64,000 nt of DNA from Eutreptiella sp. 'Long Island Sound 2002' (Eukaryota > Protista > Euglenida). The position numbers were made by a program, and so were the translations under genes. Below are positions 9,614-63,081 of this stretch, piece by piece. Under the pieces are notes generated by a model. It ran no database searches. It had not been told where the DNA came from and saw only the letters and a list, made by a program, of their open reading frames with translations. The stretch covers positions 86,738,001 through 86,802,000 of the forward strand of contig OZ038378.1 in the NCBI GenBank assembly GCA_964036045.1. The letters run 5' to 3'. Positions within the stretch are counted from its first letter, which is position 1, and each line of letters begins with the position of its first letter.

Positions 9614-10487
9614 CACTGGAATCAAGTTTTAATTAGATGCTGGCCAGACCACCGGCCAGATGGAAAATAAAAGCCCCCATGCCTTCATTTTTCAAAAATA
9701 TCCTTTTTTGGGCAACCACTATTGTTTATTGGTGTTTATTGATATTTGTGCATTGTTTGGTGATGGTTTTGGGCCTCTTTTTGATGCAGTTTGTGTGTTT
9801 TGCATCATTTTGTTCCCATTTCAAACACTCTTTCCCCTTCTCATTCTCAACATGGGGATGTATGAATGCGCCCACTTGGCCTGATCACGCCTCAAGGTGC
9901 GGCTTGGATGCCAAAATTAACAACAAGCATCCACGATTTAACACGAGCCATCCAGACTAAGGAGAAACATCCAAGATTTACCAGCAAGCGTCCACCAATA
10001 AACACCAAGCATCCAAGAACCAATAGGAGGCATCGAAGATTATCAGAAAGCATCCAGGCATCACAACAACCATTGTAGAATTTAAAGGAAGCATCCAGGA
10101 ATTCTTAGCAAGTATCCAAGCTTTGGGAGGAAGCATCGAGGCATTAACAGCCATCATCTAAGAATTAGCAAGCATCTAGGAATTAATGGGAGGCATCCAA
10201 GAATTTACAAGAAGCATCCAAGAATAAATAGTGTCCAGGAATTAATGGGAAGTATCAAAGAATACCCATCCAGCCGAAAAAAAGGCACTCAATTTAGCAG
10301 TGGGATATACAGACATGAGATGGACCCTCCCATGGATGTTCAACAATAGGGTAGACCCAAGGCACATTCAAAGGAAAGGAAGTAGCAGTTGTTCAAACAT
10401 TTTCTCCAGAAAAAAACAAAGAAACAAATCCATAAACACCTAAATAACCAATGTGCTGGCCACTAGCGAAAATTCTTTTAGCCAGTG
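9614..10487. mobile_element. Possible decayed non-autonomous element with CACTGG...CCAGTG ends
   Basis: Terminal CACTGG/CCAGTG plus partial inverted similarity (TGGCCAG; TTATT-GGTGTTTAT-GAT-TTTGT); no TSD found. Confidence 0.3.
9925..10260. repeat. Degenerate ~21-bp minisatellite (AAGCATCCAAGAATT core)
   Basis: About 15 recurrences of AAGCATCC(A/G) variants. Confidence 0.75.
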
Positions 10488-16127: not shown

Positions 16128-16901
16128 GGCGGCTCTTTACGCACGTAGACTTCGTTGCTAAAAGGCACGATTCATGGCGATTTCAACATCCGTTTTTTGC
16201 ACCCAAAAAAAGCATCTCATTTTTTCGGCCAACTCCACGTGTATTTTCATCGTGGGATACAACAACCTCGCCTTTTCTTGCTTCCAGAGGTGCACATATA
16301 CACCCCCTATTCCGGGCTAAAAATTGTATGATTTGAAATTTTTGGGCACTGCGGTGCCCAAAAATTTGAAATGGCTTTTTTCAGTGGGTTCTCCAGTACA
16401 CCTCTGTAGTCATCTCCACGGGTGATGTCCTACTGTAGCAGCAGGCATCAAAACTTGGCATACCCGTTATCAATGGGTCATCGCACCGCGGTGTTATACT
16501 CGGAAGGCCACATATAATGTATGTTGCCCAATCACTTCCATTCCTGTCCAAATGTGCACTTGAAAATGGAATTCCAGTACTTTTGGGCATTGCAGTGTCC
16601 AAAAAATTTGAAACTCCGCATTTCACTCCTATCGGTTCCCATTGCGTAACACCTGACAAAGGACGTATGAATCATTGGACGTTGGTACTCATCCTCTGCT
16701 CATTGGAAATATACTGCCGGTTGTCTGACTGCCACCTTGGAGTGTACGCAGGCTTTGGAATGTTCCACGTCCATTAGGGGATACATTGTTTGGACCTTCG
16801 CTAGCCGCTTTTGGTCTATGCCGCACCAGGTTTGTTTTGTGATGGTGTCTCTGTTTTCTTTGTCCCCTTACCTTTGCTGCCTGCAAACAGGACTTTTGTC
16901 C

Positions 16902-18088
16902 ATGGATGCGGCTCCCTTCCGGCAGTTCCTTAGTTCGAAGGTATATGCTTCACATGAGGATCTATCTGAGGCTGTGGGTAGGCATAAGGGTGCCGATGAG
17001 TTTTGTACGTGGGTGATAGATCTCCGGTTCGAGTGGAGAAGTAGGCGGTCTGTTGGTGAATACATCCAAGAAAGGGACAGGCGGACCGTTAATTGTCCGC
17101 CGGACCAATGGTTCCGTGTTGCTGAGCAAGAGGTTTTTAATAAATGGTTTTTTCCACAGAAGAGGTGTCGTCCACGTGCCAAGAGGGCTGTAGGTGTCCA
17201 ACCCAAGAGTCGTGTGCAACGTAGGTGTTTGGCTCACATGGGTCAATGTTCTTACAGTGTACCCTCCTTTGCTGTTCAAGGAGCAACTGCGTGCACCAGT
17301 CTTTGGCAGACCTTGGAAGGTAAACCCGCTGTCCTATGGTTCGATAATTTTTATAGACGTAACTTCCGGCCTATGCCTGGTAATGAGAACCGGTCCCTTA
17401 ATTGTACAGCCGGTGCTATCATACTCTTGAAACGACCTGTTGACGTTATGCCGTCTTTTCCTAGCCTCTCGGTTTTGCAGCAGAGGATTGGGTACACTGC
17501 AGACTTGTTGGTGCAGAGCCATAAAAACTTCATTGATGGCTTGCAAGGGTTGATGGACGACCCCATCCGCCTTCAACATCTTCGTTGTCCCTTGGACATA
17601 CGACGGGCTAATGTTACCAGCCCAGCTTGGACCCCCTTTTTTCTCACAGACCTAACTGTGTCCGCTACCCCTGACCTTGTCTCTATTATTCACGGGCTCC
17701 AGGAGGTGCAGCAGCACACACAGCACCGTCTTCCACTGTTGGTCGACGAAAATATTCACTACCGTGTCCTTAAGCTCGTTTACAGCATCATCTATGCTCG
17801 GTACAACGTGCCCCTGTTCATTACACGTACCCCGGTAGTGTATGGCACATGGCACCCATATAAATATTGTGTAACCCTGTGCTACAGAAGATTCTTTCCT
17901 TTATTTACCTATTTTTTGCATGGTTCACTCAATTTGGGCACTGCATTGCCACCTTTCCGAAACTCATCTATATGGAGCGTATGATTCTGGTGCTCTTGCA
18001 CTTGGCCCATAAGTGGCGCCAACCTTTGGAACAGAAGTTACTGACTCTAAGGGGTTTGCAGCGACCGGGTAACGCTAATCACAACACA
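16902..18088 (+). pseudogene. Element A transposase, N-terminal half (frameshift ~17955, cut by inversion)
   Basis: VLWFDNF, LLVDENIHYRVLK, YGTWHPYK and PKLIYME align with WVDNW, LLVDCNIHYRVLK, YGVWHPYK and PKLIVIE of the 711-aa ORF. Confidence 0.85.
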
Positions 18089-18934
18089 CTTCTTACACCT
18101 GCCCTCCCCAATTTGCCTTTCATCTTCTGACAAGAGCCGTCCTTTTCCAGCGGTTGCACTGTTGCTTGCACATCGACCAGTCGCAGGTTCCGCTTCTGCA
18201 TCGCCCGCTGGATGGCCCCCATGCTGTTCTGCCCAGTGACGCTATGACCGAGACATTTTCTCGATGCATCAGTGTAGAGGAGAGTCTAGGGGGGTCCATG
18301 CAGTACCTCGTTGTCATCGCCTCCAATAATCTCTCTGATGTCAACAGGACACTTGTGTCTGATCTCCTCGCAGTAGACGTGTTGTAACCAGTCAGGCAGT
18401 GCCCGTGAGTTCGCACAGCATTCTCGGTGAAGTCTTTGGAGTGCCGTCAGGACATGAGCCCCGCCCAAGCAGTAGGGAATTTCAGCAGATACAAAAATGC
18501 ACCACAAGGAGATGGGAGATGGGAGATATCAGCGAGATGGGCACTGCAGTGCCCAAACGACTAGAATCTGTGAAAATGCCAACGCGTGTGTGACAGGATG
18601 GTAGTGTACCTTCGTTTCGCCATATGAGAATGTTTGAGATAGGCCGGCAGGGTGGATTTGTCATCAGGCTTGCGATCCGCGATAGTACTGAGTCCTCGTC
18701 CCTCTCTCTAGTCTGCCCACGCGTCAGGTCGGTGTCAAATTTTATTTTGGTCGGCTGTATCTTGACCAGTTCCTTCTTGATCCACGTTGTCCGAAATGTT
18801 TCCGTTGCCCGGTCTGTCCCCGTCTGCTTCACTGGAGCCTGCCCCGACTGCGCCCGTGTCTTCTCTGCTGTGTGAACGGCTTGCGATGCGGTCTGCTGCT
18901 CATCCCCTTCCGGCAGTTCGGTATCCGAAGGCAT
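18089..18934 (-). pseudogene. 5' part of element A cargo gene (inside the inversion)
   Basis: ATG 18934 preceded by ctttgctaag; a likely intron 18609-18483 joins IWRNE to EIPYCLGG in frame (acceptor reads TG, presumed mutated). Confidence 0.5.
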
Positions 18935-19019
18935 AGCTTAGCAAAGGGGCTAACAAAGGGTCACACGGCACACTACAAAAGGCCACAGGGCTGCAAATTG
19001 TTGATTTACACGCTTCTAA

Positions 19020-20132
19020 TGTTGATGACTACTGGCAGGGCTTGACGATTGAACACAGATGGCAGAAATAGCATCACAGTGGGATGCACCTGGTAAAAAT
19101 CGAGGGTCAAACTCATTCAGCTCCGAAAGGACAGCCACGGGGGCATCCGAATCATCACTGTGAACGGACACTGCTTCTAGAGGGGGGGGGGGGGTCCGGG
19201 TCCCATCCATCATCACCCACAAAATTAGCAGCCCTCAGGTCTGGATCTCCGGCTGCCCCACCAGGGGGGGGGGGGGTCCTCATCACTGTCACTGTCGCCA
19301 TCAGCATTGGGGGGGGCGGGTATCCGGGCGGGGTCCCTTCGCGCAAAAGCGCGTGCTAGCCGGGGTCGCTTGTACCGGTCTGGTGTATTACATGCGCGTA
19401 ACATGTCCTGTGGCTGTGCTACTGTTGTGTCCATATCACCTGGAGGACGTTGTGGCACGTGTCTACCCAGCTCTGTCATCACCTCAGCATCAACTTTAAC
19501 AGGTTTAACAAGTGTCTGCAATGTCTTGGCACATAGATCTCGATAATGCTCGGCAGTGAGCACCGTATCTTGTGCGCAAGGAAAATACATCTTGGCAGGA
19601 TCCCACCTGACTTGCACGATACTCGACTTCTGACTCGACGAAACTAGGGGGGTGTAACACCAACATCAAATCGCGCCATCAATCTGGTGAAACGACGATC
19701 AACGAGTTGTGGCGGTCCCTTGGGAACATTAACGTACTGTATGTCCTTTGGGGCCTGGTCTGCAACGGGAGTGAGTATAAACAGGTCATCCACTTGTTGC
19801 AACGTACAGTTCCCAGGGTGTTGTGCCATTAAGTGCACAACACGGCTTAACAGGGCCTCACACGGTTCCTCACTGTGTGCCACCCCAGGTAAGCGGGCAA
19901 ACCACTGGGACCACAACAACCTAGCAACAACAATGGTGCGCACATATTCAATTTTGTCCTCGTAACCTAAGGTGAGCCTCAAAAGGACGTGTAGGCAACG
20001 GCTCAGCAATGGCCCTGCAGGGTGCTGCTCTCCGTGTGCAGACCAATGACAATCCCTCACTTGCGACCCAATAATAAACAAGGCTGGAATGTAACCATAC
20101 AGCAGCGTTACCAACCCTTGCACCTGGGACAA
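19020..20132 (-). pseudogene. Element A transposase, C-terminal half (inverted)
   Basis: LSQVQGLVTLLYGYIPALFIIG, KIEYVRTI, GVAHSEEPCEALLS and MYFP...TLV align with LRGLESLLNYYLPAIFVVG, KMDYVRTI, GAAHVEECCEALLA and TYVFP...TLV of the 711-aa ORF. Confidence 0.85.
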
Positions 20133-41900: not shown

Positions 41901-44900
41901 CCCCCCCTCCCCCCTCCGTGCTGCGTGTTTGTTTACTCTTCATTGGCACGTCAGACAGTGTTGTGCGCCTTGGGGCGCACTTGACAACCACTTCAGACAC
42001 AACTCTGCCTGTTGGTTGGCACTTCACGAGCACCTGATGCAATGCTTTGCGTGTTTGTCTGCATTTCATCAACAGCTCAAGCAACGTGCTATTTGTGGGT
42101 TTGCAATTTACCGGCACCCGAGGCACTATGCTGCGCATTGGTTTATCCGTTCACCGGCGACACAAGGAATCTACTACGTTCTTCTTTGGCCTTCATGGCC
42201 TCCGCATGCATTGTCTGGCGTGTTTGTTTGCAGTTCACGGGCACCTATAGGTATTGTGCTGCGTGTTCATTTGCACTTGAGCAGCATGTCCGGCACTCTG
42301 TTGCATGTTTAATTGTACTTCACCGTTTGTTTGCACTTCACGGGCACCTTGAACACTTTCCTGCCTGCTTGTGTGCACTTTAGCGGCACCTTAGCTACTG
42401 TACTTTGTGCAACCACGAAGCATGGCGTATGAAGGGCTATTGCAGAAAACAAAAATTCTTGGCACAATGCTTGGCGTGTTGGCTAAATGCCAATAGGCGC
42501 AAGGGGCGCGCTTGAGGTGCCGATACAACGGTGAGAAACACATAGGACTATGCTAGAGGTGACGGTGAAGTGCCCACACACACTGGTCGTCACCAGCAAT
42601 TTCCCTAGTGTGCTAGGTTATTTGCACTTACCCAATACTTGGCGCACTATGGTGCGTAGTTGTTTGCGCGTACCCGGCACCTGAGGCAGTGTGCTGCGTG
42701 TTTGTGTGCACTTCACAGGCACATCAAGCAGGGTGTTGTGTTGTATGTTTGCAGTTCACCAGGGCTGCACGCACCATGCTATGTGCGTGTTTGCTCGTCA
42801 TGGGCATCGCAAGTATTGCGCTCTGTGCTTTTTTGCACTGCCGCGGCAACTCAGCCACAATGCCGTGTGTTTGTTCGCACTTGAACACCACCTTAGGCAC
42901 CGTGCTGTTTGTTTGTTTGCACTTCAGTGGCATCTTAGACATGATGCCGCGTGTTTGTTTGCACTTCGCTGGTATCTCAGGGATCCTATGTCTTTGCACT
43001 GTGTGGCGTTTTTGGGTGCTTTTGACCCTCACGTGAAGCAGTGTGCTCTCTGCTTGGTTGCAGATCACCACAACCTCAACCATTGTATTGCGTGTTCAGT
43101 TGCAGTTGACCAACACGACACCTCCTTTCGTGCGTGTTTGTTTGCAATGGGCCAACACCTGGCGCATTGTGCATTGCGCTTGTACGCTCTTTCCTTGGCA
43201 TTTTGGGCACCATGCGGCATGTTTGTTTGGACTTCACCGATACCCCCCCCGGAATGCAGTGCATGGTTCCACCGGACCGGCATCTCTTGCACCGTTTTGT
43301 GTGTTTGTTTACATTCCTCGAGCATCTCAAGCACCGTGTTGTGTGTTTCTTTGCATTTCACCGGAACTTCTGGGAGTGCAATGCATGCTTGTTCGCACCT
43401 TACCAGCATCTGTTGCATCGTGCTACGTGTTTTTTTCAGCTTCACTGGCATCACAGGCACCGTGTTGTGTGTTTGTTTGTGGTGCACTGGTACCTCAAGA
43501 ATTGTGCCGTCTCTTTGGGTGTGCTTCACAAGCACCGGAGGAGGCATAATGCTGCTTGTTTCTTGGCAATTGACGAACTCCTCACATAGCATGTTACAAG
43601 TTTGTGTGCACTTCACTACGACTTCAAGCACTGTGCTACTTGTTAGTTTGCACTTGCCCGCCACCCCAAGCACTGTGCTGGGCATTTGTTTGCACTTCAC
43701 TTGCAATAGAAGCAATGTACTATGTGTTTGTTTGGGCTTCATAGCCACCTCATGCATTGTGGCGCTTGCTTGTTTGCCTTTCACCGGCATCTGTAGCCAC
43801 TGCGCTATGTGTTTGTTTGCACCCAAGCAGCATCTCCGGCATTATGTTGCATGTTCCATTGTGCTTCACCAGCACCTCAGGTAGCGTGCTACGTGTTAAT
43901 TTGCACTTCACGCACACCCTACACACTATGCTGTGTGCTTGTGTGAACTTTAGAAGCACTTTAGCCGGTATACTATGTATTTGCTTGCACTTCACTGCAC
44001 TTTAAGCATTGTGCTGCATGTTTGTTGGCACTTCGCTGGCACCTCAGGCACTGTGTTGCGTGTTTGGTGGCACCAAACGGTCACCTCAAGCACTCTGATT
44101 TGTGCTTGCTTGCGGTTCACCGAGACTTTGGTCATCTTACTTTGTGTTCAGCTGCAGTGGACAGGCACCAGAAGAAGTCTCGTGCATGTTTTTTGGAAGT
44201 TGCTTAGTACCTAAGGCAGTGTTGTCTGTGTTTGTTTGCACATTCCATGGCACTCCCCCGGAGTGCAGTGCCTATTTATTTGCACCTCATGAGCGTCTCA
44301 TGCACCCTGTTGTGTGTTTGTTTCCGATTCAACTGCATCCCAGGCACCGCGCTTTGTGTTTGTTTGCACTTTATTGGCACGTCACGGAGCGTTCCGTGTT
44401 TTTTGGTGCACTTCACAACCACGTGAGACGTCGCTCATTGTTTGTTGGCACTTGACGAGCATCTGATGCAAGGTGTTACGTGTTTGCCTGCACTTCACCC
44501 GCACGTCAAGCAATGTGCTACTTGTTATTTTGCACCTTGCCGCCACCCGAGGCACTATGCTGCACATTTGTGTGCAGTTCACCGGCGAATCAAGCAATCT
44601 GCTATGTGTTTGTTTGGACTTCATGGCCATTGAATGTTTTGTGCCGTGTGTTTGTTTGCAGGTCACGGGCACTTGAGTGCATCGGGCTACATGTTTGTTT
44701 GCACTTGAGCAGCATGTTCGGCACCAGGCTGCATGTTTGATTGTACTTCAGTTTTTTTCACCACTACATCGGCACCTAAGGCACAACCCTTTCCGCCTAT
44801 TGGCACTTCACCATTACGCTAGGCATTGTGCCAACATTCATTTTCGCTTCAATAGCACCTCATGCACTATGCTACTTGTTTGTTTGGTCCTCACTGGCAC

Positions 44901-47405
44901 GTTGCCTAGTTTCCTGCGTTATTTGTGCGTATTGAACACTTCACACAGTGTGATGTGTAGTTGTATGCACGTACCCAGCACCTTGGGCAGTGCATTGCGT
45001 GTTTCTGTGCTCTTCACAGGCACATCAAGCAGGGTGTTGTGTGTTTGTTTGCACTTCACTAGGTCCTTAGGCACCATGCTCATGCTATGTGTCTGTCTGC
45101 TCGTCATTGGCGTCGCAAGTATTGCACTGCGTGTTTATTTGCACTCCGCTGGCACGTAAGGCACAATGGTGTGTGTTTGTTTGCATTTCAGTGGCATCTT
45201 AGACATGGTGCCGCCTGCTTGTTTGTACTTCGCTAGTACCCCAGGCATTGTTCTTTGCCTTTGTAGGCACTTCACCAGCATCAAGGCGGCACTTCACGCA
45301 GTGCACTACGTGCCTTTTTCCACTTCACCGGCATCTAAGGTACCGTGGTGCTTGTTTGTTTACAATTCACTCACACTGCAGGAACTGTGCTCTGTGTTTG
45401 TTTCAGGTCAATGGCTCCTCAAGAAATGTGCTCCCTGTTTATTTGCACTTCACCACCGCCTCCCACAGCGCGTTGCACTTATGTATGCACTTAAGAAGCC
45501 CGGGATGCCTTGTGGCACCTGCATGTTTGCATTTCACCGGCACCTTAGGGACTGTGCTCTCTGCTTGTTTGCTTTTCACCGGACCTGTAAACATTGTGCT
45601 GCTTTTGTTGGTACTTCACAGGCACCACAAACACCATGCTCGCTGTTTGGCTGCAATTCACCGACACCACAAGCATGGTGTTGCCTGTGTGTTTGCATTT
45701 CAACGGCACCTGAGGCACTATGCAGCGTGTTGCCTTGCGTTCTATCGGCACCCAACACTACGCTGCACGATTGTTTGCACTTCACCGGCATCTACGGCAT
45801 AGTGCCGTGGGTTTCTCGGCGCTGCACTGGCGACCTTGGGCACGGTGGTTCATGTTTGTTGGCACTTCACAGACGTGGCAGGCACTGTGCCACATATTTT
45901 TTGCGCTTCACTAGCATTTTCATGCACTATGTGTTTTGGGTGCTGATATTGTGCAAGCAACCACCCAACACAATGCTCGAGGTGCTGGTGACATGTAAAC
46001 AAACAAGCACCAAAGCACGTGGGGTTCCAATTGAAGTGCAACGAAACACATTGCACGATATGTAAGCTGCCAGTGAACTGCGAACAAACATGGAGCGTGG
46101 TGCATTCGGTTCTGGTGAGTTGCAAACAAACACAAGGCACAGTGTCGGGGCTGCTAGTAAGGGGCAAACAACCACGTAGCACGGCGCCTCGTGTGCTGTT
46201 GAAGTGCAAACAAACACGTAGGACAACGCCTCAACCTAATGAAATGCAAACAAACACGCATTCTAGTGCATGTGTTGCCAATGAATTGCAACCAAACACG
46301 CAGCACGGCGTCGCATGTGCAAGTGCACTGCAAAGAAACAGGACCGAAATGCCTAAGGTGCCGGTGAAGTGCATACAAACATAGAGCACCGTACTTGAGG
46401 TGCGTGTGAAGTGCAAACAAACACACGCATCAATGCCTCAGGTGACGATGAAATCTGTCTCAAGTACCTTTGAAGTGCAAACACACACATAGACTACTAG
46501 GTGAGGTGCCGGTGAAGTGCAAACGAGCGCTCAGCACGGTGTTTGAGGTGCTCACATTGTGCAAACAAACCCCCACCACAAAGCTTGCGGTGCTGGTGAC
46601 GTGCAAAGAAACAGGCAACATAGCACGTGGGGTTCTAGTTGAAGTGTAACCAAGCACAGGGCACGATCCGTGAGCTGCGGTGAAGTGAAAACAAACACGG
46701 AGCACAGTGCATGAGGTTGTGGTGAATTGCAAACAAACACACAATGCGTTGGCCGGTAGTGAAGCGCAAACAACCACGTAGCAAGTTGCCTTGCGTACTG
46801 TTGAAGTGCAAACAAACACATAGGACAACGGCTAGCTTAATGAAATGGAAACAAACACGCATTCGAGTGCGTGCGTTGCAAGTGAACTGCCCAAACAAAG
46901 AGCATGGTGTCGACTGTGCCGATGAAGTGCAAAGAAACAGGACAATTCCTAAGGTGCCGGTGAAGTGCATACAAACACAACGCTCCCTACTTGAGTTGCG
47001 TGTGAAGTGCAAACAAACCTGCAGAACAATGTCTGTTTGGTTGCACCTCATGGGCATCTGCAGGCACTGTGTTGCGTGTTTGTTTGCACTTCATGGGCAC
47101 CTCCCTCGCTGCGCCGTGTGTTTCTTTCCACTTAATTGGCACCTCACACAACGAACAACATGCTTTTTTTGCACTTCACCGGCACCGGAGGCATTGTTGT
47201 GCGTATTCTTTTGCATACCATACGCACCTCAAGTATTGTCCTTCACTTTTGTACACACTTCACTGGCACCTGCGGCATTATGCCGCGTTGGTTTGCACTT
47301 CAACGACACCCCGCTCACTACACTGTGCGTTTGTTTGCACTTAGTCGGCACCTCACACACTAAGCTACATTTTTTTTGCACTTCAGTGGCACTTCAGTCC
47401 ACGTT
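41900..47405. repeat. 42-bp minisatellite field, mainly reverse orientation
   Basis: GTTTGTTTGCACTTC units; forward blocks at ~42410-42585 and ~45945-47025. Confidence 0.9.
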
Positions 47406-47860: not shown

Positions 47861-48028
47861 CACCTAGCCCCTAGGCAACAAGTTAACCACCACATAGCGT
47901 CCGAGACTTCAGGACCCCGGCAGTATGTCCCTGCGGCTCACTGGTGGCTAAGTGGAAATGTGAAGTTGCCCCCCTATCCGCCTACCCATCCATTCCTTCT
48001 CGCTCCCATAGGTCCTCTCTTTCAACCC

Positions 48029-49702
48029 ATGTCTAATGTCATCCCAGGCCTGGAACCAGCGGCTTCAAAGGCTCTTGCGTCTTTCCTTAGTCGCCCCCGG
48101 GTACCTACCGCTTTCACAGAGGCAGCGTACCCGGGGGTGCCTTTGACGGACCTAGAGCCCTCGAAGCTGTGGGCCCAGCAGCTCCCTGCCCCTTCCCCAG
48201 AAGTGGTCCACATCACCGTGTCCGATGTGACCCTTCTTGGAAAGAGCTGGATGCACGGGCGCAACCAAATGTTGCGCCAGGTGCATCCAGCTCTTCCTGC
48301 CGTACGCTTCCGCTTTCCTGTGGCTGCTGTCCAAGATTTGGTGCAGCAGTCCTCAGGAAAGCTGATGGATACCCCCCACGAGTTCGGGACACGGGTTCAT
48401 GACATCAAAGATCTCCAACACGGTTGGACTGCAGATTTTGGTGTCAGCCCCGTTGCACCCAAGAAGGGACTCCTTGAGGCCCTGCCTTTCGGGGTCGGGG
48501 TGGTGTCAGGGGAATGGTGGGAAAGCCTTTCGGCTTGTCCCATCATTCCTCAGTGGTGCCATGTGGTGCCCGACTACACCAACCCAGCCCTGTACAGGAC
48601 CAAGGAGTCCGTGTTCCTCCGCGGTGCTGCCTCTCCTCCCCCCTACATCTCCCTGGCAGCCCCGGTGTTCTCACATGAACTCGCGGCTCATGACCTTGAG
48701 TCGGATGAGTCCTTGTGTGACTTGGGGCTCCGGGTGGTTAGAGGGGCGGTAGAGGCCAAGGAGTGCGAGAACTGGTACCGCATTCTCGTCGACTCGTGCG
48801 GCACCCAGCCGGATGCAATTTGGGATCTGCTGTCCAATGCACACTCTCGCGAGGACTGTTTGGCTGATCCCAAACTGCCACGGCGCTGGGGTACTCGGCC
48901 CGGCAAGCCTATCTCTGTGTTGGGAAGGGACCCCTTGCAACGGGCTAGTGAGCAGTGCAGTGCTCTCTGACCCGAGATGAGGGATCTCTTCCCAACGCAG
49001 TGGTCGGCAATTGCCGCCAGGGAAGATGCTAGGGAGCAGACCTGGCATACCAACGTTGATAAGTTGCCAGGTGGCTCCCTAGCATGGGTGAGCTGCCCGG
49101 GCATCTCTCAATGATGCTTGTCCTCTCGGACAAGTATCATTTGGAGGTGGACTTTAGGGAGCCACCTGGGGGACCATGACGCTATGCGGGTGGAGACCTT
49201 CGAGTTTCAGCGTGGGGACATATTTCTCTTTGCCTCCACGCTGAGACATCGGGGTCTCGCCGCGCTGCCGGGGATGGGGAAGCAGGTTGTTCTCTTCAGC
49301 TTCCTCACCCCCGACGAGCGTCACAAGTGGGTGGACGTGGAGCGGTTCATCTTTGACCCTGTGCCAGGGGCCAGGGATGAGCTGGCTTCACGGCCACGGG
49401 GAGACGGGCCGCTGCCCAACCCCAGGGCTCTCGGCCACTGGGTGCAGTACTTCGCCTTCGGCGGGGGACTGCAGGGCGCGGTCGGTGTGCCGCAGTTTGA
49501 GCAGCTGGACGACTGGCTTGCCCCCGTGGGCCCGTCAGGCCCCGGCTGCCCATACCACCCGCTGCTGCTAGCCAAGCCTGCCCTAGACGCTGCCGACCCC
49601 ATGTGCCACGTGTACGTGGAGGAAGGCGACGTCCTGTGGACAAGCGGGCCATCATGGCTCGACCCGGGTGACAGTGGACCCGGGGAGGCCACCATGCTGT
49701 AG
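48029..49702 (+). pseudogene. PhyH-like 2OG-Fe(II) dioxygenase-domain protein, degraded
   Basis: GLRVVRGAV...QTWHTN (HxD site)...LSMMLVL...LGSH...FQRGDIFLFASTLRHRG...KQVVLF; stop at 48968-48970 and two compensating frameshifts ~49080-49155. Confidence 0.72.
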
Positions 49703-50263
49703 CAATATTGGGCCCCCTCCTCCCGCCCCATCTCCGCACAGCAGGCTTTGCTGCTCGGCTTCTCGTGGCATCGTGGGCCGGAGAAGCGGTGTACAAGGAG
49801 CGATGTGGGCGCTGAGGTCCCACTTTTGATGCGCTGCATCTGCAGCGGCAAGGTGTTACTACCTTCTCCCCCTGCCCTGCAGGATTCACACCGGGGTGTT
49901 GGGGCGAATATTGTTAGGGGGCGCAACTGGGTGGTGGTGGGGTGCACCAGGGTGTTTGGAAAGGTGGGTTCGGGGCTGTGGGCCTGTGGGGCTGTGGGCT
50001 GGCAGGGGGTTCTCTGTGTGTTATGCGTGTAATGCCCCACGAGCGGGTTTAGCATGTGCACAGGGTGCCCCACGCGTGGGCTTAACATGTGCACAAGGTG
50101 GCCAGCGCGAGGGCCTCCTGCACAGGCCGTGCCAGTCGGTTGCCGGCCTTTACGGGGCCTGTATGGGGGCCTGTACGGGCCCTGTATGTGGCCTGCATGG
50201 GGCTGTGCTGAGGCGGCTCCAGCATCCTGCCGCCAGTTGCAGTTGCCAGTTTGTAGGTGCAAC

Positions 50264-50412
50264 TGAGAGCTGACTGAGCCGTCTGGCGCACTGAGTGAGC
50301 GCTCACTGAGCCATTTGGCACGCTCACGGAGCGCTCACTGAGCGCGCCAAATGGCTCAGTGAGCGCTCAGCGAGCCCAATTAGCTCTCCCTGACGGCTCA
50401 GTGAGCTCTCAG
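50264..50412. repeat. Palindromic CTCACTGAG/GCTCAGTGAG spacer 1
   Basis: Clustered direct and inverted copies of CTCACTGAGC. Confidence 0.85.
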
Positions 50413-50599
50413 TGGGGTGGAACCCGGGACAAGGCCGTTGCAATGCTTTGCTGCCGTTTGCATCTTTATCGAAACTGTTACTTTTGGAGTCCCCCCCCCC
50501 CCTACATTTGCAGGCTCAATTCCCCCTGCACGAGCTTTTGGTTGATGCAAACGGCAGCAAAACACAGAGTCAACGTTCGCGCCCGGTAACGTTTGCGCC

Positions 50600-52160
50600 G
50601 CCCAGCGAAGGTGCCAGCAGTTCATTACGACCACCGCTTCGACGGCAGCTGCAACTGGCGTCAGTGACGAAGAGGCCGGTGCCGGGGCCATCGGAGCGGA
50701 GCCCGCGCTGGTGACAGCCATGGGCGAGGGGGCAGCGGCGGTTGACAAGGGTCCGGGGCCGGTGGGCCCATCACTCGCCGACCTGGCCATCGGGTCCCCG
50801 GTCCCTTTCCCCCCGGTGCAAGCACCCCGGGCCAGTGTTGTACGCGCGGGCTACTTGGGGCTCTACATTGCCCCGGTCAACAAGCAGCCCGCACCGGCGT
50901 ACCTCCTCAACAGGACGGTTAACGTGAAGGGGGTACCGGGGCACTCCACCGAGACGTGGTATTGGAGCGTAAGCCTGAACGCGGTCACCGCCGCGCAGAC
51001 AACGACGCCCACCCAGATGCACCTCCCGTGCAGGGTGACCGTCTCCGAGGATTGTGGGCTGGTGGCAGGGGAGGGGGGATTTATTGTAGCCCGCTTTGCC
51101 TACCGGCTGGGGTCCAGTGTTGGGACCTAAGTGTGGGGTCGGAGGAGGGGGGGTTGCTGGCCCGCGCTGGCTCAATTGCTTTTAAGCAGGTGGCGTCATG
51201 GGAATTGCAGGGGGAGGGGCTTTTCTTGGAGGCTTGGCACGCCATGCGTGGCCACGTCGCCACCTTCCGTGCCAGCGCTATGGGGGAGGACGTCATCGAG
51301 CCAGAGGTGGTCAGTGATGGGGAGGTGACGGATGGGGGGAAGAGTGATGGCGCCTGCAGTGATCGGAGTGCCCGCAGTGGGACCGGGAAAGGAAAAAAAC
51401 AGGCAGCCAAGGACAGCAACCCCCCCGCCCCCCCTAAAAAGCTAGCGGGCAAGGGAAATGCAGCCGCACCACAAAAAGCGGCTCTTGGGAGCCCCCTTCG
51501 TGAGCCTGGGTCACCGGGCACCGTGCCCATGACCGTGTACCGGGAGGCATGCCGTGACCGTGACCAGTTCCGCCAGGAGCGGGATGCTGCCCGTCTGGCA
51601 GCGGAAGCAGCCTCCCGTCTCAAGGAGGAGCTGGACACGGTCAGGCGGCAGCGGGACGACCTGCAGGCCCAGCTCGTGGACTCTGAGCGCCAACGGGCTG
51701 GCAGTGATGCACGCCTGGAGCTCTGGAGGTGCTGCAGCGGTCCAAGGGCTTGAAGCACATTGAATCTGGGCCGGGGGCTGCATCCCCCTCCCAATCAGGG
51801 GTTCCGGCTGCACCCCCCGCCACCTATAGCGCGCAGTCCATGCAATTCTTGGCATCGGGACTGTTGGAGTACGCCCTCTTGGCCACGCGGTTGATGGCCG
51901 ACGCCAAGTCGTCGTGCCAGCAGCTGCAGGCCATTGCGGGGTTGGCTCGAACAACCACAATGCCGGACTTGAGCGTTCACAGCCTGCCGAAGGTTGAGGC
52001 GGAAGTGTCAACTGGCCTGCAGAACGCCGACACCGGTATCAGTCGGATGTGGTGGCGGCTGCTCAGCAGCCTGGCTGGGAGCCAGAACCTGTGGTTGGCA
52101 GTCCGGGTTCTCTCCCTGGAACTGCGGCTCTGTGGTAGCCGCTGGACCCCCACTACGTGG
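50600..52160 (+). pseudogene. Coiled-coil-containing cargo gene of element T
   Basis: Frameshift-linked ORFs 50711-51130, 50956-51753 and 51729-52193; heptad-rich DRDQFRQERDAARLAAEAASRLKEELDTVRRQRDDLQAQL. Confidence 0.6.
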
Positions 52161-52704
52161 TTCGTATGTATGTATGGTATATATTGTTGTTGAGCACTTC
52201 ATGGTGCTGAAATTTCTTCGGGGGGGGCTGGGGCCACAGATTGCAGCGTGTTGCGCACTTTGTGGGCCACCAGTTTCTGCCCTGTTGTGTCCCTTTCTTT
52301 CACAGGTAAACGTGCCGTGATTCTGGCCCTGTACCAATTGCAGTTGTATGTTACTTTGAAAATATTCACAGAGCTGAAAATGTTCAAGGCGGCCAGGGGC
52401 CACCACTTTAAGCTCTGATGTGCGGCTTTTTTTCACACAGGCCAGGGGCCACCACTTTCAGCCCTGTTGTGGGCGTGTGTTCAAGACCAGGGCCAACTCT
52501 GGCCCCTGTGGTATGTTGCGCCCTTTTTTTTTCTAGTAGGCCAGAGGCCACCTCTTTCAGCCCTGTTATGGGCACGTACAGGAGCACGGCCAGATTTGGC
52601 CCCTGTATGTTCAGACTACAAACAGTCTTTTTGAAAAATGAATTGGCCTCTTGTGTGGTGCCAGTGCAGTGCTCGTCTTTAGGTGTGCAGTGACTAAGAC
52701 GTAA

Positions 52705-52825
52705 CTGAGAGCTCACTGAGAGCTCACGGAGCGCTCAATGCGCCCTTTGGCGCGCTCAGTGAGCGCGCGAGAAGGCACAGTGAGCGCTCAGTGAGCGCGC
52801 CAAACGGCTCAGTGCGCTCTCAGTC
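52705..52825. repeat. Palindromic spacer 2
   Basis: Same motif family as 50264-50412. Confidence 0.85.
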
Positions 52826-53047
52826 GGGTGGATGGCTGCGCCCTCCAATTGTTGGCCGCCACAAACTGGTGGTTGTGGGTAGGGGGTTCCAGGGGGATGT
52901 GCCACCTACCACCAGGGACTGAAAACAGGGTGTGTGCCAGGGCGGTGTGTGGGGGGGGGGGGGGGGCTGCAGCGCATATTACGGCATCAACCAGGGGGAG
53001 GGGGGCATCAAAGGGGGCAATGGGAGACGCTACGGGGGGGGGCATTA

Positions 53048-53185
53048 GGGGACAAACACCCTGGCGGCATCCCGGTGGGGGGGGGTATGACGGGACAAAC
53101 ACCCTGGCGGCATCCCCGGGGGGGGGGATGGGACAAACACCCTGGCGGCATCCCCTGGGGGGGGGGGGGGATGGGACAAACACCC
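53048..53185. repeat. ~40-bp G-run VNTR (3.5 copies)
   Basis: GGGACAAACACCCTGGCGGCATCCC followed by a G run. Confidence 0.9.
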
Positions 53186-53289
53186 TAGTGTTACCCCACT
53201 ACCCCACCCCGAGGAAGAGTGTGAATCCTGCATGGGGAAAGGGGGGCGAAGGCTAGGGACAACAATTAAGGGGAAACAGGTGGGGGGAC

Positions 53290-53820
53290 TGCACAGTGCA
53301 CGTAGGCCCAAATCCACCGGTTGGTGCCGTCAACGCCGATGGTCACCCAGGTGTTGCGCTGCGCGCCCGGTTGCAAGGGTTCCGGTGTGCGTACGGCACG
53401 CTGTTCATAGAGCAGGGCTAGCCGCTCGGCAATATTGTAGTACGCCCCTTGCATCTCATACTCCCCCTCAAGGATACAAACCCACCGGCTAGCAGGTTGG
53501 CTGAGGTGCTTCAGCCACGGGGCCACGTCGGCCCAGCTAACGGTGCCGTCCACGTCGGGTAGCAGGTAGGCCATGTCGCGGCGCGACATCTGTGAACTAC
53601 GCATCTGCCACAGCGCGCGCAAGGCCTCCGACTTGATGTCGGGACTGGTGTCCGTGGGCCGGCTATAGTCCTCAGGGGCTAGCAGTATGCTACCATCGGG
53701 TTGGAGCTCGGCCCGATATTCCTCACATAGGGAGGCCGCCACCGCGGCTTCCAGATGCTCAATCCGGGTTGCACGCTGGCGCTGTGTTCCCAACAAGGAA
53801 AAGGGACGTTTAGGTGGCAT
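53290..53820 (-). pseudogene. RAG1/Transib-like transposase, N-terminal part (inverted)
   Basis: MPPKRP...NTWVTIGVDGTNRWIWAYVHCA; first catalytic Asp candidate at 53329-53331. Confidence 0.72.
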
Positions 53821-53909
53821 TTTGTGTAGCACCTGTGGTATAGGTGTAGTGCCACATGCAGTCCCTTTGCTTGCGGCACACTTATCTCTGTTCACATCTC
53901 TTTGCTGCA

Positions 53910-55114
53910 CCGGGTTGTGGGCCCACACAGCTTGCTAGCTGGTGGCTGTTCGAGGGTAGCGAGATGTGGGCCACGGTGTACAGCATGCAATCGGAGTGTG
54001 ACTTCCATACGCAGCTCCGCGCTGCTACGGCCCTGCAACTGCCGCATGCGGATGGGGTGGCGTGCAGCCCCCTATTCTTCGTCCAGGCCGATGGCAAGGC
54101 CCACATCATGCTGGCCGGCAGGGACGGCTTCACCAAGAAGAGCCCCCAGGCCATGGTGTGCCACTGTTGCGGCGCAAACCGTGAAACGGTTTTGCGCAAG
54201 TTCGGGCGACAAGAGGTTGCCATGGAAGGAATCAAGGGCCATGTACGGCTGACCGGGGTGTTTCGTGACATCCCGGTGGACCGCCGCGTTCCTGACTTCG
54301 GTGCGCATGGAGTCATGCGTGTTGCCATTGCGGGGGTCAATGGAATTGTGCGGGGGCTCGTGACCCATGGAGGAGTATCGAGGAAGAGTGCGGCCACCAT
54401 GGTGCAGGGGGTTGTAAACGGGGCACGGAGAGTGGCCCGCACGGTGTGGCCTGGAAAGTGGGGGGCGGACACGGCAAATGCCAAAGGACAAGTGCACATG
54501 GAGTTGGGGGCTGCTGCGCACTTTGTCAAGGCCCGGCTGTGGGGCCCACTGCTGCAGCTGGTTGCACCCGTGATTGGGAACCATCAAGTGGGGGGCAGGC
54601 CATGGGTTGATGTGTGCACGGAGTGGTGGGAGGCGTTTGCGGTCATGGCCGAGGTGGCCTGGAAGGACGACTTTCCGAATGGTGCAGAGCAACGTGCCTT
54701 TCTGCAACGCCAACTGACCATGGGGGCAAGGCACCTTTACCATGGGGGAAGACCCCGTGGACGCACATGTGGGTTGACCACATGTATGCGTACGTTGCAC
54801 GGTGGGGGACCATTGCAAGGTTTAGTTGCTTTGCATTGGAGGGCAGCCATGTGCGACTAAAACGGGTGCTTAGGAATAGTGGGGGGGTCAACTTGCTGAA
54901 CGATAGGTCGGGCTTGCAGTGTGTGGTGGATAACCACACACTAGATGATAACCTCCGCAAGGAAGGTTGGGAGGTGCAGAGTAGGGCTGTGACCAAGCAA
55001 AGAGGGTTCCAACAACGGTGCATGACTTCGTCACGTGCCCGGCGGGAGGGGAAGGGGAGAGAGAACATGGTGAGGAGGATTGTGGAACGTGCATTGCGAC
55101 AAAGGACCAAGTAA
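53910..55114 (+). pseudogene. RAG1/Transib-like transposase, core and C-terminus (one frameshift ~54735)
   Basis: FFVQADGKAH..CHCC..PDFGAHG..TPWTHMWVDH..WGTIARFSCFALEGSHVRLKR parallels RAG1 D708, C727/C730, H795, H937/H942 and E962. Confidence 0.8.
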
Positions 55115-55150
55115 GTGCTTATGATGGATGATTTGTGCCCGTGCATGTTA

Positions 55151-55310
55151 AGTGAGCCTTGAGTGAGCCCCCAATCAGCTCTCATTCAGCGCTCACTGAG
55201 CGCTCACTGAGCCATTTGGCGCGCTCACTGAGCGCTCAGTGAGCGCTCACTGAGCCGGCTTAGTGACCGCTCAGTGATGGCTCAGTCGGGGTGCTCAGTC
55301 AACTGAGCCG
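55151..55310. repeat. Palindromic spacer 3
   Basis: Perfect 20-bp palindrome CTCACTGAGCGCTCAGTGAG at 55224-55243 plus variants. Confidence 0.88.
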
Positions 55311-56099
55311 TCGAAAAAAAGAAACCCCCCCGGTGAAATCCTCTTGGCCTAGGGATTGGTATCCCTTTGGGGACATTCCAAAACCCCAACCAAGCCCCGA
55401 AAGCCACAACTCTTCACATTAAACCCCTTGAAAAACACCACTTAGCCCCAAATGAGCCATTTTAGCCCCAACTGAGCCCCAACTTCATATTTCCAAGTGA
55501 GCCGTAGGTACATAGTGACAATGATTAGTAAGCGGGGCATAGGAAGCCGAAGGAGAAAAAAAACCGATGCAACGCCGGTTACAACTTTTCACAACAGGGT
55601 CAAGAGGGTGAAGGGCCCCAAGGCAGCCGCGAATTCGTCCGATGTATGTAGCAGTTTAGTACTTATATTCTTAAAAATGGGTACTGTGGTTTGCCGTGCT
55701 GATAATGTTCATGGGCCCTGTTTGAGGATATGTTCTACCCTACGATCACGCTAGAAGACCCGATTTCCATCTTGCCCACGTGGCGCTACATCAGCTACAA
55801 CAAAACAGGGGGGGGTTACCCCAACCCTTGGGGGTAAAGGCTGGGTAATATGAGGGATGCAACTTGGACCCCCGTATCGGTCCTTGGGGGGCCAGCGTTT
55901 GTTTTTCATGATTTGATTGTTTTGACATGAAATTGGAGTGCAAACAAAATGCTGTTCTAGCGACGTTCTCACGAGCGCTGCTCGCGCTCGCCACAACGTT
56001 GCTACAACGCTTTGCTAGAACGACGCTAGAACAATACCAATGAATGCTCTACCACTCCTAAAAGAGAAGCTGCCCCACTACCATGGCCAGCCGTGGGCA

Positions 56100-60945: not shown

Positions 60946-63081
60946 ATGGCACCGGTTTCTATGTCGTTGCATGTCAGCTACATGCGGTCTCTTTGTAAGA
61001 CAGAATGGCGCACTGGTCGCCAAATGATATTGTCGGCTGTGTGCCATGTCGTGGCAAAGGAATTCATAAGATTCTGTGCGGGTCTACGTGTCAACAAGCG
61101 GACCCGCATTACGGTCGACCGCGTTCGCAAGGTGTTGGCACGAAAACAATGGCCGCGTTGGCTAACTAATTTTTCCAAGGAGGCCTATCATGTATGGCTG
61201 GGGATGCGTCGCATGGCCTTGCCACAAGCGGCCGTCCCCAGTGGTGAGAGCACCATTGCTGTAATGCGGGCAGACAGCCGCAAGCTTGTGCACGCTGGTA
61301 TCACCAAGCCGTCCCGGTTGTCTATTGCAGACCAGGGGGCATTACAGTTCCGGAAACTGTGGCGTAGCATTGTTCGCCGTGATATTGTGATGTGGGTGGA
61401 CAACTGGTGGCATGCCCAGTTTCCGGCCAATCCGGTGAGACCCAATGTCTGTCTAGATGTGACTGCCATAGCGGTGTTGCACACAACCCCCCTTCCTCAT
61501 TTTCTTGGCCACCCGAGTTTGTGTGACCTAGTGGACCGGGTGGAAACAGTGGCCATGGCAGTTGTTCAACAGCACAGAGAAATGTTGAAGGTGTGCACTG
61601 ATATGTGCAATACACCCATTTCTCGGAGAACCATCCGTGCCCCCCTCGATGTTGCCCGGGAGGCTGGTAGACAGCAACTCTTTTGGAAGCCATTCGGCAT
61701 ATATGAGTCCCGTACAGGTGAGAACCAAGAGCTCTTGGATCTCCTCGATATGCTACGCACTAACCAACGGCATTGTCAAAAACCTATGGCATTGCTCGTT
61801 GATTGCAACATCCACTACCGGGTGCTCAAATTTTTGTACTCTAGAGCAACCATTGACTGCAATTTTCCGGATTGGTTGCGGGGTATCTCGTTGATTTACG
61901 GCGTCTGGCACCCCTACAAACATGTTTGCAATATCATTTGGTGTAAATTCTTTCCTCTGTTTTCGTACATCACCGCTCCCGTGTTTGGGGCCGGTGCGTG
62001 CATATATAACCATCCCAAACTCATTGTAATAGAGAAAACCATCCCTGCCCTCCTTCTCTCAGCCCCGGACATACGGGCACAACTTCGGCAGAAAATTACC
62101 CTGTTTGAGGGACGCGGCAACCAAGCAGCCCTAAACACACAGGATGGGTTGCGCATCCTTCGGGGCCTTGAATCCCTCCTGAATTATTACCTCCCGGCCA
62201 TCTTTGTAGTAGGACACTTAGTGCGCAATTGCACTTGGGCTGGGCGCGCCGACGGGACTGGTATAGTGGCCACGTGTGTACTTCAGCGCTGCGTGGGTCT
62301 GCTTGTTGACCTAGCCGGTCCAGCTGCAGCAAAAATGGACTATGTCCGTACCATATGTTGTGCACTTCTGTACAATACACAATGGCACGACGACACGCCT
62401 GGTGCTGCCCATGTGGAGGAATGTTGTGAGGCCCTGCTTGCAAAATTGCGGGCACGGTGGGAGCAACACCCCGACAAGCACACGGCGTATGAGGCTGGTG
62501 ACCTATTCCGCACCATGCCCCCCCGTCAGGAGGCACGTGCAACGGAGTCCCTCTCCGAAAGTGTGTGTGTTGAGGTGCGCGACAAGGTATGGGCACTCAT
62601 GCGTGGTGCACGACGGGAGGAGCATCCAACTGTGCGATGGTCCTCGGGTCCAGTTAGTGTGGTTGAGGCAAAGAGAGACACAACGTACGTGTTCCCCGAA
62701 AAGGGAACCGGGGGTACCCTAACAGTTGTGTTCATGAAATCTATTCTAAAGCGCTTTCTGTGCACCCTAGTAGGTGGACAAGGGCTCCGCGATGATGCCA
62801 TGGCTTACATACGTCAACATATCCCACTTAGGCCACCTGTGAACCGCCGCGAAGCCCGGGCAGCTGTAGCAACAGTTGGGTTCATACCAATTGCAATGGA
62901 GCACATTATTCCCCCAGTGCCAAATGCAATGTTCATTGATCATGTGCGTGCCCCCCCTGAGGATTGCGTACCTGTGATCCGAGCGAGGGATGCTGTAGAT
63001 GTTGATGCCCTGTCTGATGGCCCTGTACCTGTTGTGCTCAGTGAGGAGTTGCGTGAATTTGATCTGATAGATTCGGACTAA
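60946..63081 (+). CDS. Intact 711-aa putative transposase, DUF6589/KDZ-like
   Basis: Uninterrupted ORF; motifs WVDN, KPFGIYESRTGENQELLDLL, LLVDCNIHYR, YGVWHPYK and EECCEALL conserved in three diverged copies; lies inside TIR-bounded elements. Confidence 0.8.
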   Translation: MAPVSMSLHVSYMRSLCKTEWRTGRQMILSAVCHVVAKEFIRFCAGLRVNKRTRITVDRVRKVLARKQWPRWLTNFSKEAYHVWLGMRRMALPQAAVPSGESTIAVMRADSRKLVHAGITKPSRLSIADQGALQFRKLWRSIVRRDIVMWVDNWWHAQFPANPVRPNVCLDVTAIAVLHTTPLPHFLGHPSLCDLVDRVETVAMAVVQQHREMLKVCTDMCNTPISRRTIRAPLDVAREAGRQQLFWKPFGIYESRTGENQELLDLLDMLRTNQRHCQKPMALLVDCNIHYRVLKFLYSRATIDCNFPDWLRGISLIYGVWHPYKHVCNIIWCKFFPLFSYITAPVFGAGACIYNHPKLIVIEKTIPALLLSAPDIRAQLRQKITLFEGRGNQAALNTQDGLRILRGLESLLNYYLPAIFVVGHLVRNCTWAGRADGTGIVATCVLQRCVGLLVDLAGPAAAKMDYVRTICCALLYNTQWHDDTPGAAHVEECCEALLAKLRARWEQHPDKHTAYEAGDLFRTMPPRQEARATESLSESVCVEVRDKVWALMRGARREEHPTVRWSSGPVSVVEAKRDTTYVFPEKGTGGTLTVVFMKSILKRFLCTLVGGQGLRDDAMAYIRQHIPLRPPVNRREARAAVATVGFIPIAMEHIIPPVPNAMFIDHVRAPPEDCVPVIRARDAVDVDALSDGPVPVVLSEELREFDLIDSD

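Follow-up and report, generated by a model that had tools for sequence, protein, structure and literature searches.

The window analysed here is a 64,000-nucleotide stretch of the genome of the euglenid Eutreptiella sp. 'Long Island Sound 2002' (assembly GCA_964036045.1, contig OZ038378.1, positions 86,738,001 to 86,802,000 of the forward strand). Positions 47926-55512 of the window are one copy of a DNA transposon of about 8.1 kb that carries three co-oriented genes: open reading frame 1 (ORF1), which probably encodes an Fe(II)/2-oxoglutarate (2OG) dioxygenase, ORF2, which encodes a coiled-coil protein, and a transposase gene. The features of this copy are listed below in window coordinates; L001, L005 and L006 are sister copies, and protein lengths are in amino acids (aa).

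47924-47925, unstranded: left 2-bp target duplication (TA); the same dinucleotide stands at 55513-55514
47926-47968, plus strand: left terminal inverted repeat, from aligning left ends to the reverse complements of right ends and from blastn against L001
48029-49702, plus strand: ORF1 pseudogene, an N-terminal domain followed by an Fe(II)/2OG-dioxygenase-like core; intact counterpart at L001:4489-6498 (669 aa)
50262-50421, unstranded: palindromic spacer 2, made of GCTCACTG / TGAGCGCTCA units, from repeat and motif counts
50711-52193, plus strand: ORF2, coiled-coil protein gene split over three frames; intact 406-aa counterpart at L001:7424-8644
52692-52832, unstranded: palindromic spacer 3, from repeat and motif counts
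53288-53906, minus strand: inverted segment in which the transposase begins, its ATG at 53820 reading to the left, and which includes the first catalytic Asp (IGVDGT); matched in reverse by L001:9915-10533, L005 and L006 at 91-95% identity
53907-55114, plus strand: rest of the transposase (second Asp, CxxC, PD.G.HG, HxxxxH and Glu), with a 4-bp deletion near 54741
55149-55301, unstranded: palindromic spacer 4, from repeat and motif counts
55428-55512, minus strand: right terminal inverted repeat, from alignment of ends
55513-55514, unstranded: right 2-bp target duplication (TA), matching the left dinucleotide

An initial annotation had read this region as a RAG1/Transib-like transposon with a dioxygenase cargo gene. 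Its three co-oriented genes, and the single family of palindromic spacers that it placed between them, are both present.

Boundaries, copies and decay of the element

The transposon nature of the element is borne out by its inverted ends, by target duplications and by the existence of four full copies. The window copy, L001, L005 and L006 are collinear at 87-96% identity and lie at unrelated genomic sites whose flanks are not common to them. L001, which was reached through its transposase P0002, is collinear in blastn with window 47926-55513 at 89-95% identity and possesses all three genes in intact form; L005 and L006 were reached through ORF1 proteins. Homology in all four copies stops exactly at 5'-TGTACCTGCGGCTCACT ... 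AGTGAGCCGCAGGTACA-3' (TGTAC...GTACA), and each copy is bordered by a 2-bp target duplication: TA in the window, TC in L001, and AT in both L005 and L006. The insertion of L001 lies in a satellite repeat, the unit of which reads through the insertion with only the 'TC' doubled. The GC content of the element region is 59-64%, against approximately 50% around it.

The terminal repeats are perfect over 17 bp (TGTACCTGCGGCTCACT), while the whole terminal inverted repeats are imperfect and extend for about 60 bp. The inverted subterminal motifs of the initial annotation, which had proposed a span of 47870-55620, are real: they are the inner portions of these repeats, and the element itself ends beyond them, at 47926 and 55512. 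On the left, the repeat in the window consists of the 17-bp terminal motif, a 10-bp spacer and the start of the 32-bp shared inner motif, where it is shortened by a 323-bp deletion. On the right, the terminal 17-mer directly abuts the inner motif. The left terminal motif of the window copy reads TGTCCCTGCGGCTCACT, and that of the sister copies TGTACC... The ends are asymmetric in that the 10-bp spacer GGTGGCTAAG is found at the left only (window 47926-47968 versus 55428-55512; L001:4052-4135 versus L001:12070-12158), a difference of one helical turn that is loosely reminiscent of 12/23 signal asymmetry.

Clustering at 90% identity groups 83 members for the transposase, at least five of them full-length 582-aa ORFs on different contigs, and 91 members for ORF1. 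Because several clustered members are full-length ORFs on different contigs, the family must have been active recently.

The window copy itself is dead, as a result of a deletion, a 619-bp inversion, frameshifts and stop codons, all called by comparison with the majority of four sister copies. The 323-bp deletion, which lies upstream of ORF1, took out a fourth palindromic spacer. ORF1 lies in a 581-codon frame (47960-49702) with two stops inside. The first, at 48970, came from TGG (Trp) by a G>A change to TGA and not, as originally proposed, from CGA>TGA at 48968; the second was created where one missing base at 49073 (-1) and one extra base at 49153 (+1) scramble 27 codons of the oxygenase core. 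The end of ORF1 at 49702 is itself a stop lesion (CAG>TAG at 49700). Two further substitutions had been read, like the first stop, as CpG-type transitions. The change of HTD to HTN (GAC>AAC at 49052) is a genuine substitution, as all sister copies and all contigs covering 49052 read G, but its ancestral context is TG rather than CG; the supposed R to Q change (CGG>CAG at 49283) was mistaken because Q is the ancestral residue, found in every copy (GKQVV). The window copy nonetheless derives, as had been deduced, from a version with an intact HxD.

ORF2 of the window copy has undergone several frame changes, and the transposase gene is disrupted by the 4-bp deletion and by the inversion at 53288-53906. 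Because of this inversion the first approximately 178 transposase codons (P0002 residues 1 to about 178), including that of the first catalytic Asp, lie on the minus strand. The transposase-like ORFs of the window are those at 53856-54860 and 54614-55114 on the plus strand and a 220-aa ORF at 53266-53928 on the minus strand. The inversion is private to the window copy: L001, L005 and L006 are mutually collinear, and contigs from the DNA-like runs X1 and X4 have the uninverted order. It may be an assembly artefact.

The transposase and its place among DDE transposases

A homologue search with a 334-aa piece of the transposase retrieved 57 proteins, all but one from ENA assembly contigs, and each of the 10 homologue contigs looked up belongs to assembly ERZ25074135. 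The intact transposase P0002 (582 aa, L001:10001-11749) is among these homologues, and an exhaustive profile search yielded 334 transposase relatives. In a motif alignment of 14 relatives, the most distant at 28% identity, the conserved residues are (P0002 numbering) D164 (IGVDGT), D241 (ADGKAH), C264-x2-C267, R306, P308, D309 and H313 (R.PD.G.HG), H467-x4-H472 and E492 (EGSH..LK). The RAG1 residues are D708, C727/C730, H937/H942 and E962 (PMC4914335), and the distances between motifs compare as follows:

Second Asp to CxxC: 23 residues in the transposase family, 19 in mouse RAG1
CxxC to HxxxxH: 200 residues in the transposase family, 207 in mouse RAG1
HxxxxH to Glu: 20 residues in the transposase family, 20 in mouse RAG1

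A C(2)C motif and an H(3-4)H motif between the second Asp and the Glu ('2C and 3H') are common to EnSpm/CACTA, Mirage, Chapaev, Transib, Plavaka, ESTA, Lanisha and RAG1 (Kojima 2025, PMC12730594). This group constitutes the CMCT clade, in which target duplications measure 2-5 bp, and within it Plavaka-A combines 2-bp duplications with TGT..ACA termini (PMC12730594). The family described here has C(2)C, H(4)H and the third His, and the element shows both a 2-bp target duplication and TGT..ACA termini. The transposase is classed as a predicted DDE transposase of the CMCT clade and forms, by sequence, a lineage that no Pfam model covers; judged by its ends, the element fits Plavaka-A most closely.

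Neither single sequences nor profiles of the transposase gave a match in Pfam or NCBIfam, and the Plavaka model PF18759 found no match in 14 family members at E up to 10. The RAG1 Pfam domains and the RAG1/Transib chains of the PDB were not matched at E up to 10 by single sequences, by the 14-sequence profile or by two sub-profiles, and profile searches of the PDB, including those with the sub-profiles D2-CxxC-H and HxxxxH-E, gave chance matches only. By language-model features, the named neighbours of the transposase among atlas clusters are Plavaka, RAG1 domains (RAG1_RNase_H, ZnC2, ZnH2) and Transposase_21.

These results bear on whether the element could be a true member of the Transib/RAG1 superfamily, its short duplication and its ends being a derived oddity. 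Transib elements generate a 5-bp target duplication and have heptamer-like CAC..GTG ends. The element shares with Transib and RAG1 the D-D-E triad and a CxxC plus HxxxxH zinc site at nearly the RAG1 spacing, with H(4)H as in RAG1 and distances of 200 and 20 residues where mouse RAG1 has 207 and 20. The atlas matches to the RAG1_RNase_H, ZnC2 and ZnH2 clusters point the same way, as does the 10-bp difference between the two ends, which recalls the 12/23 asymmetry. Membership is unlikely, however, given 2-bp duplications in all four copies, ends of the form 5'-TGTACC...GGTACA-3' (TGTAC..GTACA) and the lack of any hidden Markov model match to RAG1 domains or to RAG1/Transib chains; a RAG2-like partner is also missing from the element. 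Since the 2C/3H motif is common to the whole CMCT clade, the RAG1 likeness of the transposase is a clade-wide signature, and HHpred similarity to RAG1 has also been reported for ESTA, which is not a Transib (PMC12730594). Of the RAG1/Transib-like description given at the outset, the order D-D-C(2)C-H-H(4)H-E at a RAG1-like spacing is retained, while the Transib ends, the 5-bp duplication and a profile match are not found.

Relatives of the transposase also occur outside this genome. Six contigs of approximately 2 kb from aquatic metagenomes (L007-L012) carry intact transposase ORFs that are 28-41% identical to P0002; the contigs are barely longer than the gene and look mRNA-like. As they come from several aquatic metagenomes, the transposase family is widespread among aquatic protists.

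The dioxygenase-like gene as a selected passenger

The first gene encodes a protein of at least 610 aa, which in L001 has 669 aa (L001:4489-6498). Its core reads QTWH340-T-D342 ... GSH ... GD-x3-FAST-x-RH407RG ... GVGK418 ... LFR424F in the intact L001 protein, and thereby contains the motif order QTWH-T-(D), GSH, GD-x3-F-x4-H-x-G on which the gene had initially been recognized. The putative iron triad, H340-T-D342 with H407, is conserved wherever a subfamily shows no visible decay, and the series HTD...RHRG...GVGK...LFRF is kept across subfamilies. Two basic residues that follow the distal His, K418 (+11) and R424 (+17), are invariant, and either is a candidate 2-oxoglutarate ligand.

Two profile libraries gave sub-threshold matches to this core. 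The Pfam model 2OG-FeII_Oxy_3 (PF13640) scores 16.7 bits (E 0.015; cut-off 27 bits) and covers exactly the HxD-to-distal-His stretch, and phrog_61 of PHROG ('2OG-Fe(II) oxygenase') aligns with the same stretch in three diverged members (E 0.018, 0.0024 and 0.27). By language-model features, 70 of the 100 nearest atlas clusters form a set whose named clusters carry PhyH, and the top cluster comes from giant viruses. As the two libraries and the language-model features all single out this part of the protein, from HxD to distal His, the core is 2OG oxygenase-like, and ORF1 can be regarded with good confidence as a probable Fe(II)/2OG dioxygenase. Its assignment to PhyH specifically is only a lead.

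Other searches with ORF1 were negative. In Pfam, Tet_JBP was not matched at E up to 10 by any ORF1 member, and NCBIfam gave no match to ORF1. The N-terminal half (approximately 225 residues) has no recognisable domain by Pfam, PHROG or atlas feature search (atlas scores at most 0.71), and neither Pfam nor PHROG detected ParB in residues 1-225. Homologue searches with the whole protein and with the domain only found just copies from the same assembly and two short JGI contigs, and a scan of viral contigs with the oxygenase core found no relative.

Selection was estimated between subfamilies by the Nei-Gojobori method as the ratio of nonsynonymous to synonymous substitution rates (dN/dS), with the following results:

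Oxygenase core: 0.17-0.24
ORF1 N-terminal half: 0.21-0.33
ORF1 residues 428-611, downstream of the core: 0.34
ORF2: 0.20-0.26
Transposase: 0.13-0.18
Control, the same DNA read out of frame: 1.11-1.19
Recently diverged pseudogene pair L013/L014: 0.69-0.85

All three genes are under purifying selection (dN/dS 0.13-0.34); as dS between subfamilies is saturated (1.0-2.8) these ratios are approximate, but the contrast with the controls is still clear. The ratios also inform the possibility that ORF1 is not an active dioxygenase at all, but a structural or DNA-binding accessory whose HxD...H is fortuitous or vestigial and whose function resides elsewhere, for example in binding the palindromic arrays. 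Such a role would be compatible with profile matches that are all sub-threshold, with the absence of PDB and NCBIfam matches, with an AlphaFold model that is unusable, and with selection on an N-terminal half without a recognisable domain. It is nevertheless improbable: all subfamilies without obvious decay keep the putative metal ligands and the basic residues after them, no part of the protein is more constrained than the core (0.17-0.24 versus 0.21-0.33 in the N-terminal half), and two independent profile libraries and the language-model features agree on both the family and the stretch.

The co-occurrence of dioxygenase and transposase within shared ends, which had been set as a test of the initial annotation, is kept in the four full copies, and the linkage of the genes is also kept in three diverged subfamilies. 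L003, the transposase of which is 63% identical to P0002, has a decayed ORF1, then ORF2 and the transposase, in that order; L013 (62% identical) has the same order; and in L014 ORF1 adjoins a truncated transposase. ORF2 was detected by tblastn in the subfamilies L002, L003 and L013. The spacers of L002 (L002:7000-12300) are built from other palindromes: those upstream of ORF2 belong to a GTGGCACTTTGC-type family, and those flanking the transposase to a GTTCACTG/GCTCACTGCAAG-type one. This pattern suggests exchange, or else co-evolution, of cassettes and their spacers. The locus L004 was considered as an independently mobilised 'ORF1 cassette', and this was rejected, L004 being a truncated copy that abuts another repeat. 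That the three genes do not form one mobile unit, the dioxygenase and coiled-coil genes being host genes or other repeats beside a transposase, might be argued from L002, which has no detectable ORF1, and from L004, which has ORF1 without the other two genes, but can for practical purposes be dismissed, since the full gene set lies within the same inverted ends, next to target duplications, in four copies at unrelated sites with unshared flanks, L004 is truncated, and the diverged subfamilies keep the gene order. The dioxygenase-like gene is thus supported as a genuine, selected passenger linked to the transposase. This linkage is seen in the present genome; the metagenome relatives of the transposase lie on contigs of about 2 kb without flanks.

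Sequence words drawn from the element are found in sequencing runs of two organisms, as well as in metagenomes and metatranscriptomes from estuaries. Two metatranscriptomes contain contigs of 160-450 nucleotides that match ORF1, ORF2 and the transposase at 85-99% identity. Their depth reaches its minimum on the spacers (1.2 and 0.4, or zero), with stretches of ORF2 equally low, and depth in the DNA-like runs is highest on the spacers. The metatranscriptome pattern fits transcription of other copies of the element, although it is not proof of it.

The most satisfactory explanation of the locus, to which we assign a probability of roughly 0.75, is that window 47926-55512 holds one dead copy of a cut-and-paste transposon of about 8.1 kb that is abundant, was recently active and has a predicted CMCT transposase, Plavaka-A-like ends, a probable passenger dioxygenase with a PhyH/P4H-like core, and a coiled-coil gene. 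Several results count against it. The placement of the transposase draws on motifs and terminal features only, with no significant profile match to RAG1, Transib, Plavaka or Transposase_21, and all dioxygenase profile matches fall under curated thresholds (16.7 bits versus 27), with no PDB sequence match for the oxygenase core in profile searches. AlphaFold models have a mean predicted local distance difference test score (pLDDT) of 35 for the transposase, from a 6-sequence alignment, and of 29 for ORF1, from a 7-sequence alignment. L002, with a transposase 54% identical to P0002, has ORF2 and the transposase, and no ORF1 was found within 10 kb upstream. To these are added the saturation of dS and the origin of the RNA evidence in mixed-community libraries that possibly contain DNA.

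A few features of the surrounding sequence were also recorded. In both metatranscriptomes a segment of approximately 106 bp downstream of ORF2 (52365-52471, within the repeat family 52245-52606) has a depth about ten times that of neighbouring coding regions (49 and 46). As its contigs run into unrelated sequence on both sides, it is taken to be a short repeat common to abundant transcripts or to another mobile unit. This segment has no match in Rfam, nor does the window or the 52.2-52.7 kb repeat. Between spacer 3 and the transposase, at 53033-53186, stand 3.7 copies of a G-rich tandem repeat with a 43-bp unit, which L001 also has at about 9659-9822. Arrays of a 42-bp satellite in both orientations occupy 42824-47400, close upstream of the element; the satellite around L001 has a different unit. 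The repeat at 16124-20126 of the window recurs at 94-95% identity next to the truncated ORF1 copy in L004 (L004:11480-14460), two abundant element families being inserted here one inside or beside the other. An intact 711-aa ORF at 60946-63081, in a neighbouring palindrome-rich element, has no Pfam match and no similarity to ORF1.

Palindromic arrays and kinship with known systems

Each palindromic array of the element is 150-200 bp long and hairpin-capable, and in each spacer of L001 GCTCACTG forms a plus-strand block followed by a minus-strand block (+ + + - - -), with copies mostly 11 or 32 bp apart. Within L001 this 8-mer has 30 sites inside the element and none in 13.6 kb of flank, and the 10-bp palindrome TGAGCGCTCA has 18 copies, grouped in four clusters so that every gene lies between two of them. 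In the window, GAGCGCTCACTGAGC with at most one mismatch occurs 16 times in the 64 kb, each time inside one of the three spacers, against an expectation of 0.01. The L001 equivalent of spacer 2 can fold into a near-perfect hairpin with a stem of about 90 bp (-95.8 kcal/mol, z -13). Spacer sequences differ between diverged subfamilies, in which GCTCACTG is retained. One further copy of GCTCACTG is found inside the left terminal repeat of L001, and because the unit is present there too, a DNA-binding protein encoded by the element is the natural candidate for the binder of the arrays.

The initial annotation had offered the combination of such a transposon with a dioxygenase as a new system for which no dioxygenase partner was known. 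Precedents are in the literature, both for CMCT transposons with TET/JBP genes (PMC12730594) and for a red-algal Plavaka with a PhyH-like oxygenase (bioRxiv 10.1101/2025.02.11.637652). Fungal transposons of several superfamilies, including KDZ and the CMCT lineages EnSpm, ESTA and Plavaka-B, carry TET/JBP dioxygenases as selected passengers that are thought to counter silencing (PMC12730594). The present element resembles them as a cut-and-paste transposon, several of these being CMCT, with an Fe(II)/2OG dioxygenase as a selected passenger; it differs in the PhyH/P4H-like features of ORF1, in its host lineage, and in its extra coiled-coil gene and palindromic arrays. With Plavaka-A it shares the 2-bp target duplications and the 5'-TGT..ACA-3' termini, and Plavaka relatives likewise have accessory genes, but the element lacks a PF18759 match, its host is a protist and not a fungus, and its cargo is PhyH/P4H-like and not TET/JBP.

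The giant Plavaka of the red alga Bostrychia moritziana has the accessory genes PAG1-3, of which PAG3 encodes a ParB-like domain and a putative 2OG oxygenase with the PhyH-domain structure 2OPW as its best HHpred match; inverted-repeat arrays beside PAG3 have been proposed as self-binding sites (bioRxiv 10.1101/2025.02.11.637652). A gene for a putative 2OG oxygenase with PhyH-like features and inverted-repeat arrays beside an accessory gene are common to both systems. The red-algal elements are 17-19 kb long and contain a DNA-methylase/SET gene, whereas the element described here is 8 kb long and its arrays flank every gene. Compared by description only, PAG3 has a ParB-like N-terminal domain and ORF1 has no detectable ParB similarity. 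A full-text literature search found no report of such elements in euglenids or with PhyH cargo. The arrangement is already on record from fungi and red algae, and the element is its protist variant: its logic is common to the fungal and red-algal systems, while host, size, gene set, sequence lineage and array placement differ.

By analogy with TET/JBP cargo and with PAG3, the ORF1 dioxygenase may act on the DNA, RNA or chromatin of the element, which would keep the element expressed or mobile, and it would probably be recruited through the GCTCACTG arrays. A more elaborate scheme would have the arrays serve as loading sites at which the element recruits its own oxygenase, by way of the N-terminal half of ORF1 or of ORF2, as a self-targeted anti-silencing device with a non-TET, PhyH-like enzyme that modifies its bases or chromatin. 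This scheme is speculative and more probably wrong than right by a wide measure. If self-targeting were true, the enzyme of a euglenozoan host could act on thymine- or base-J-type modifications and not on 5-methylcytosine.

How mobile DNA fights silencing by its host is illustrated by transposons equipped with a chromatin- or DNA-modifying enzyme of their own. The case described here comes from a distant protist, with a different oxygenase lineage, strong purifying selection and several intact copies. A third, independent case would suggest that the association of a 2OG oxygenase with a CMCT transposase is ancient or recurrent. L001 supplies an intact enzyme for biochemistry, and the transposase family widens the range of sequences around the RAG1/CACTA signature.

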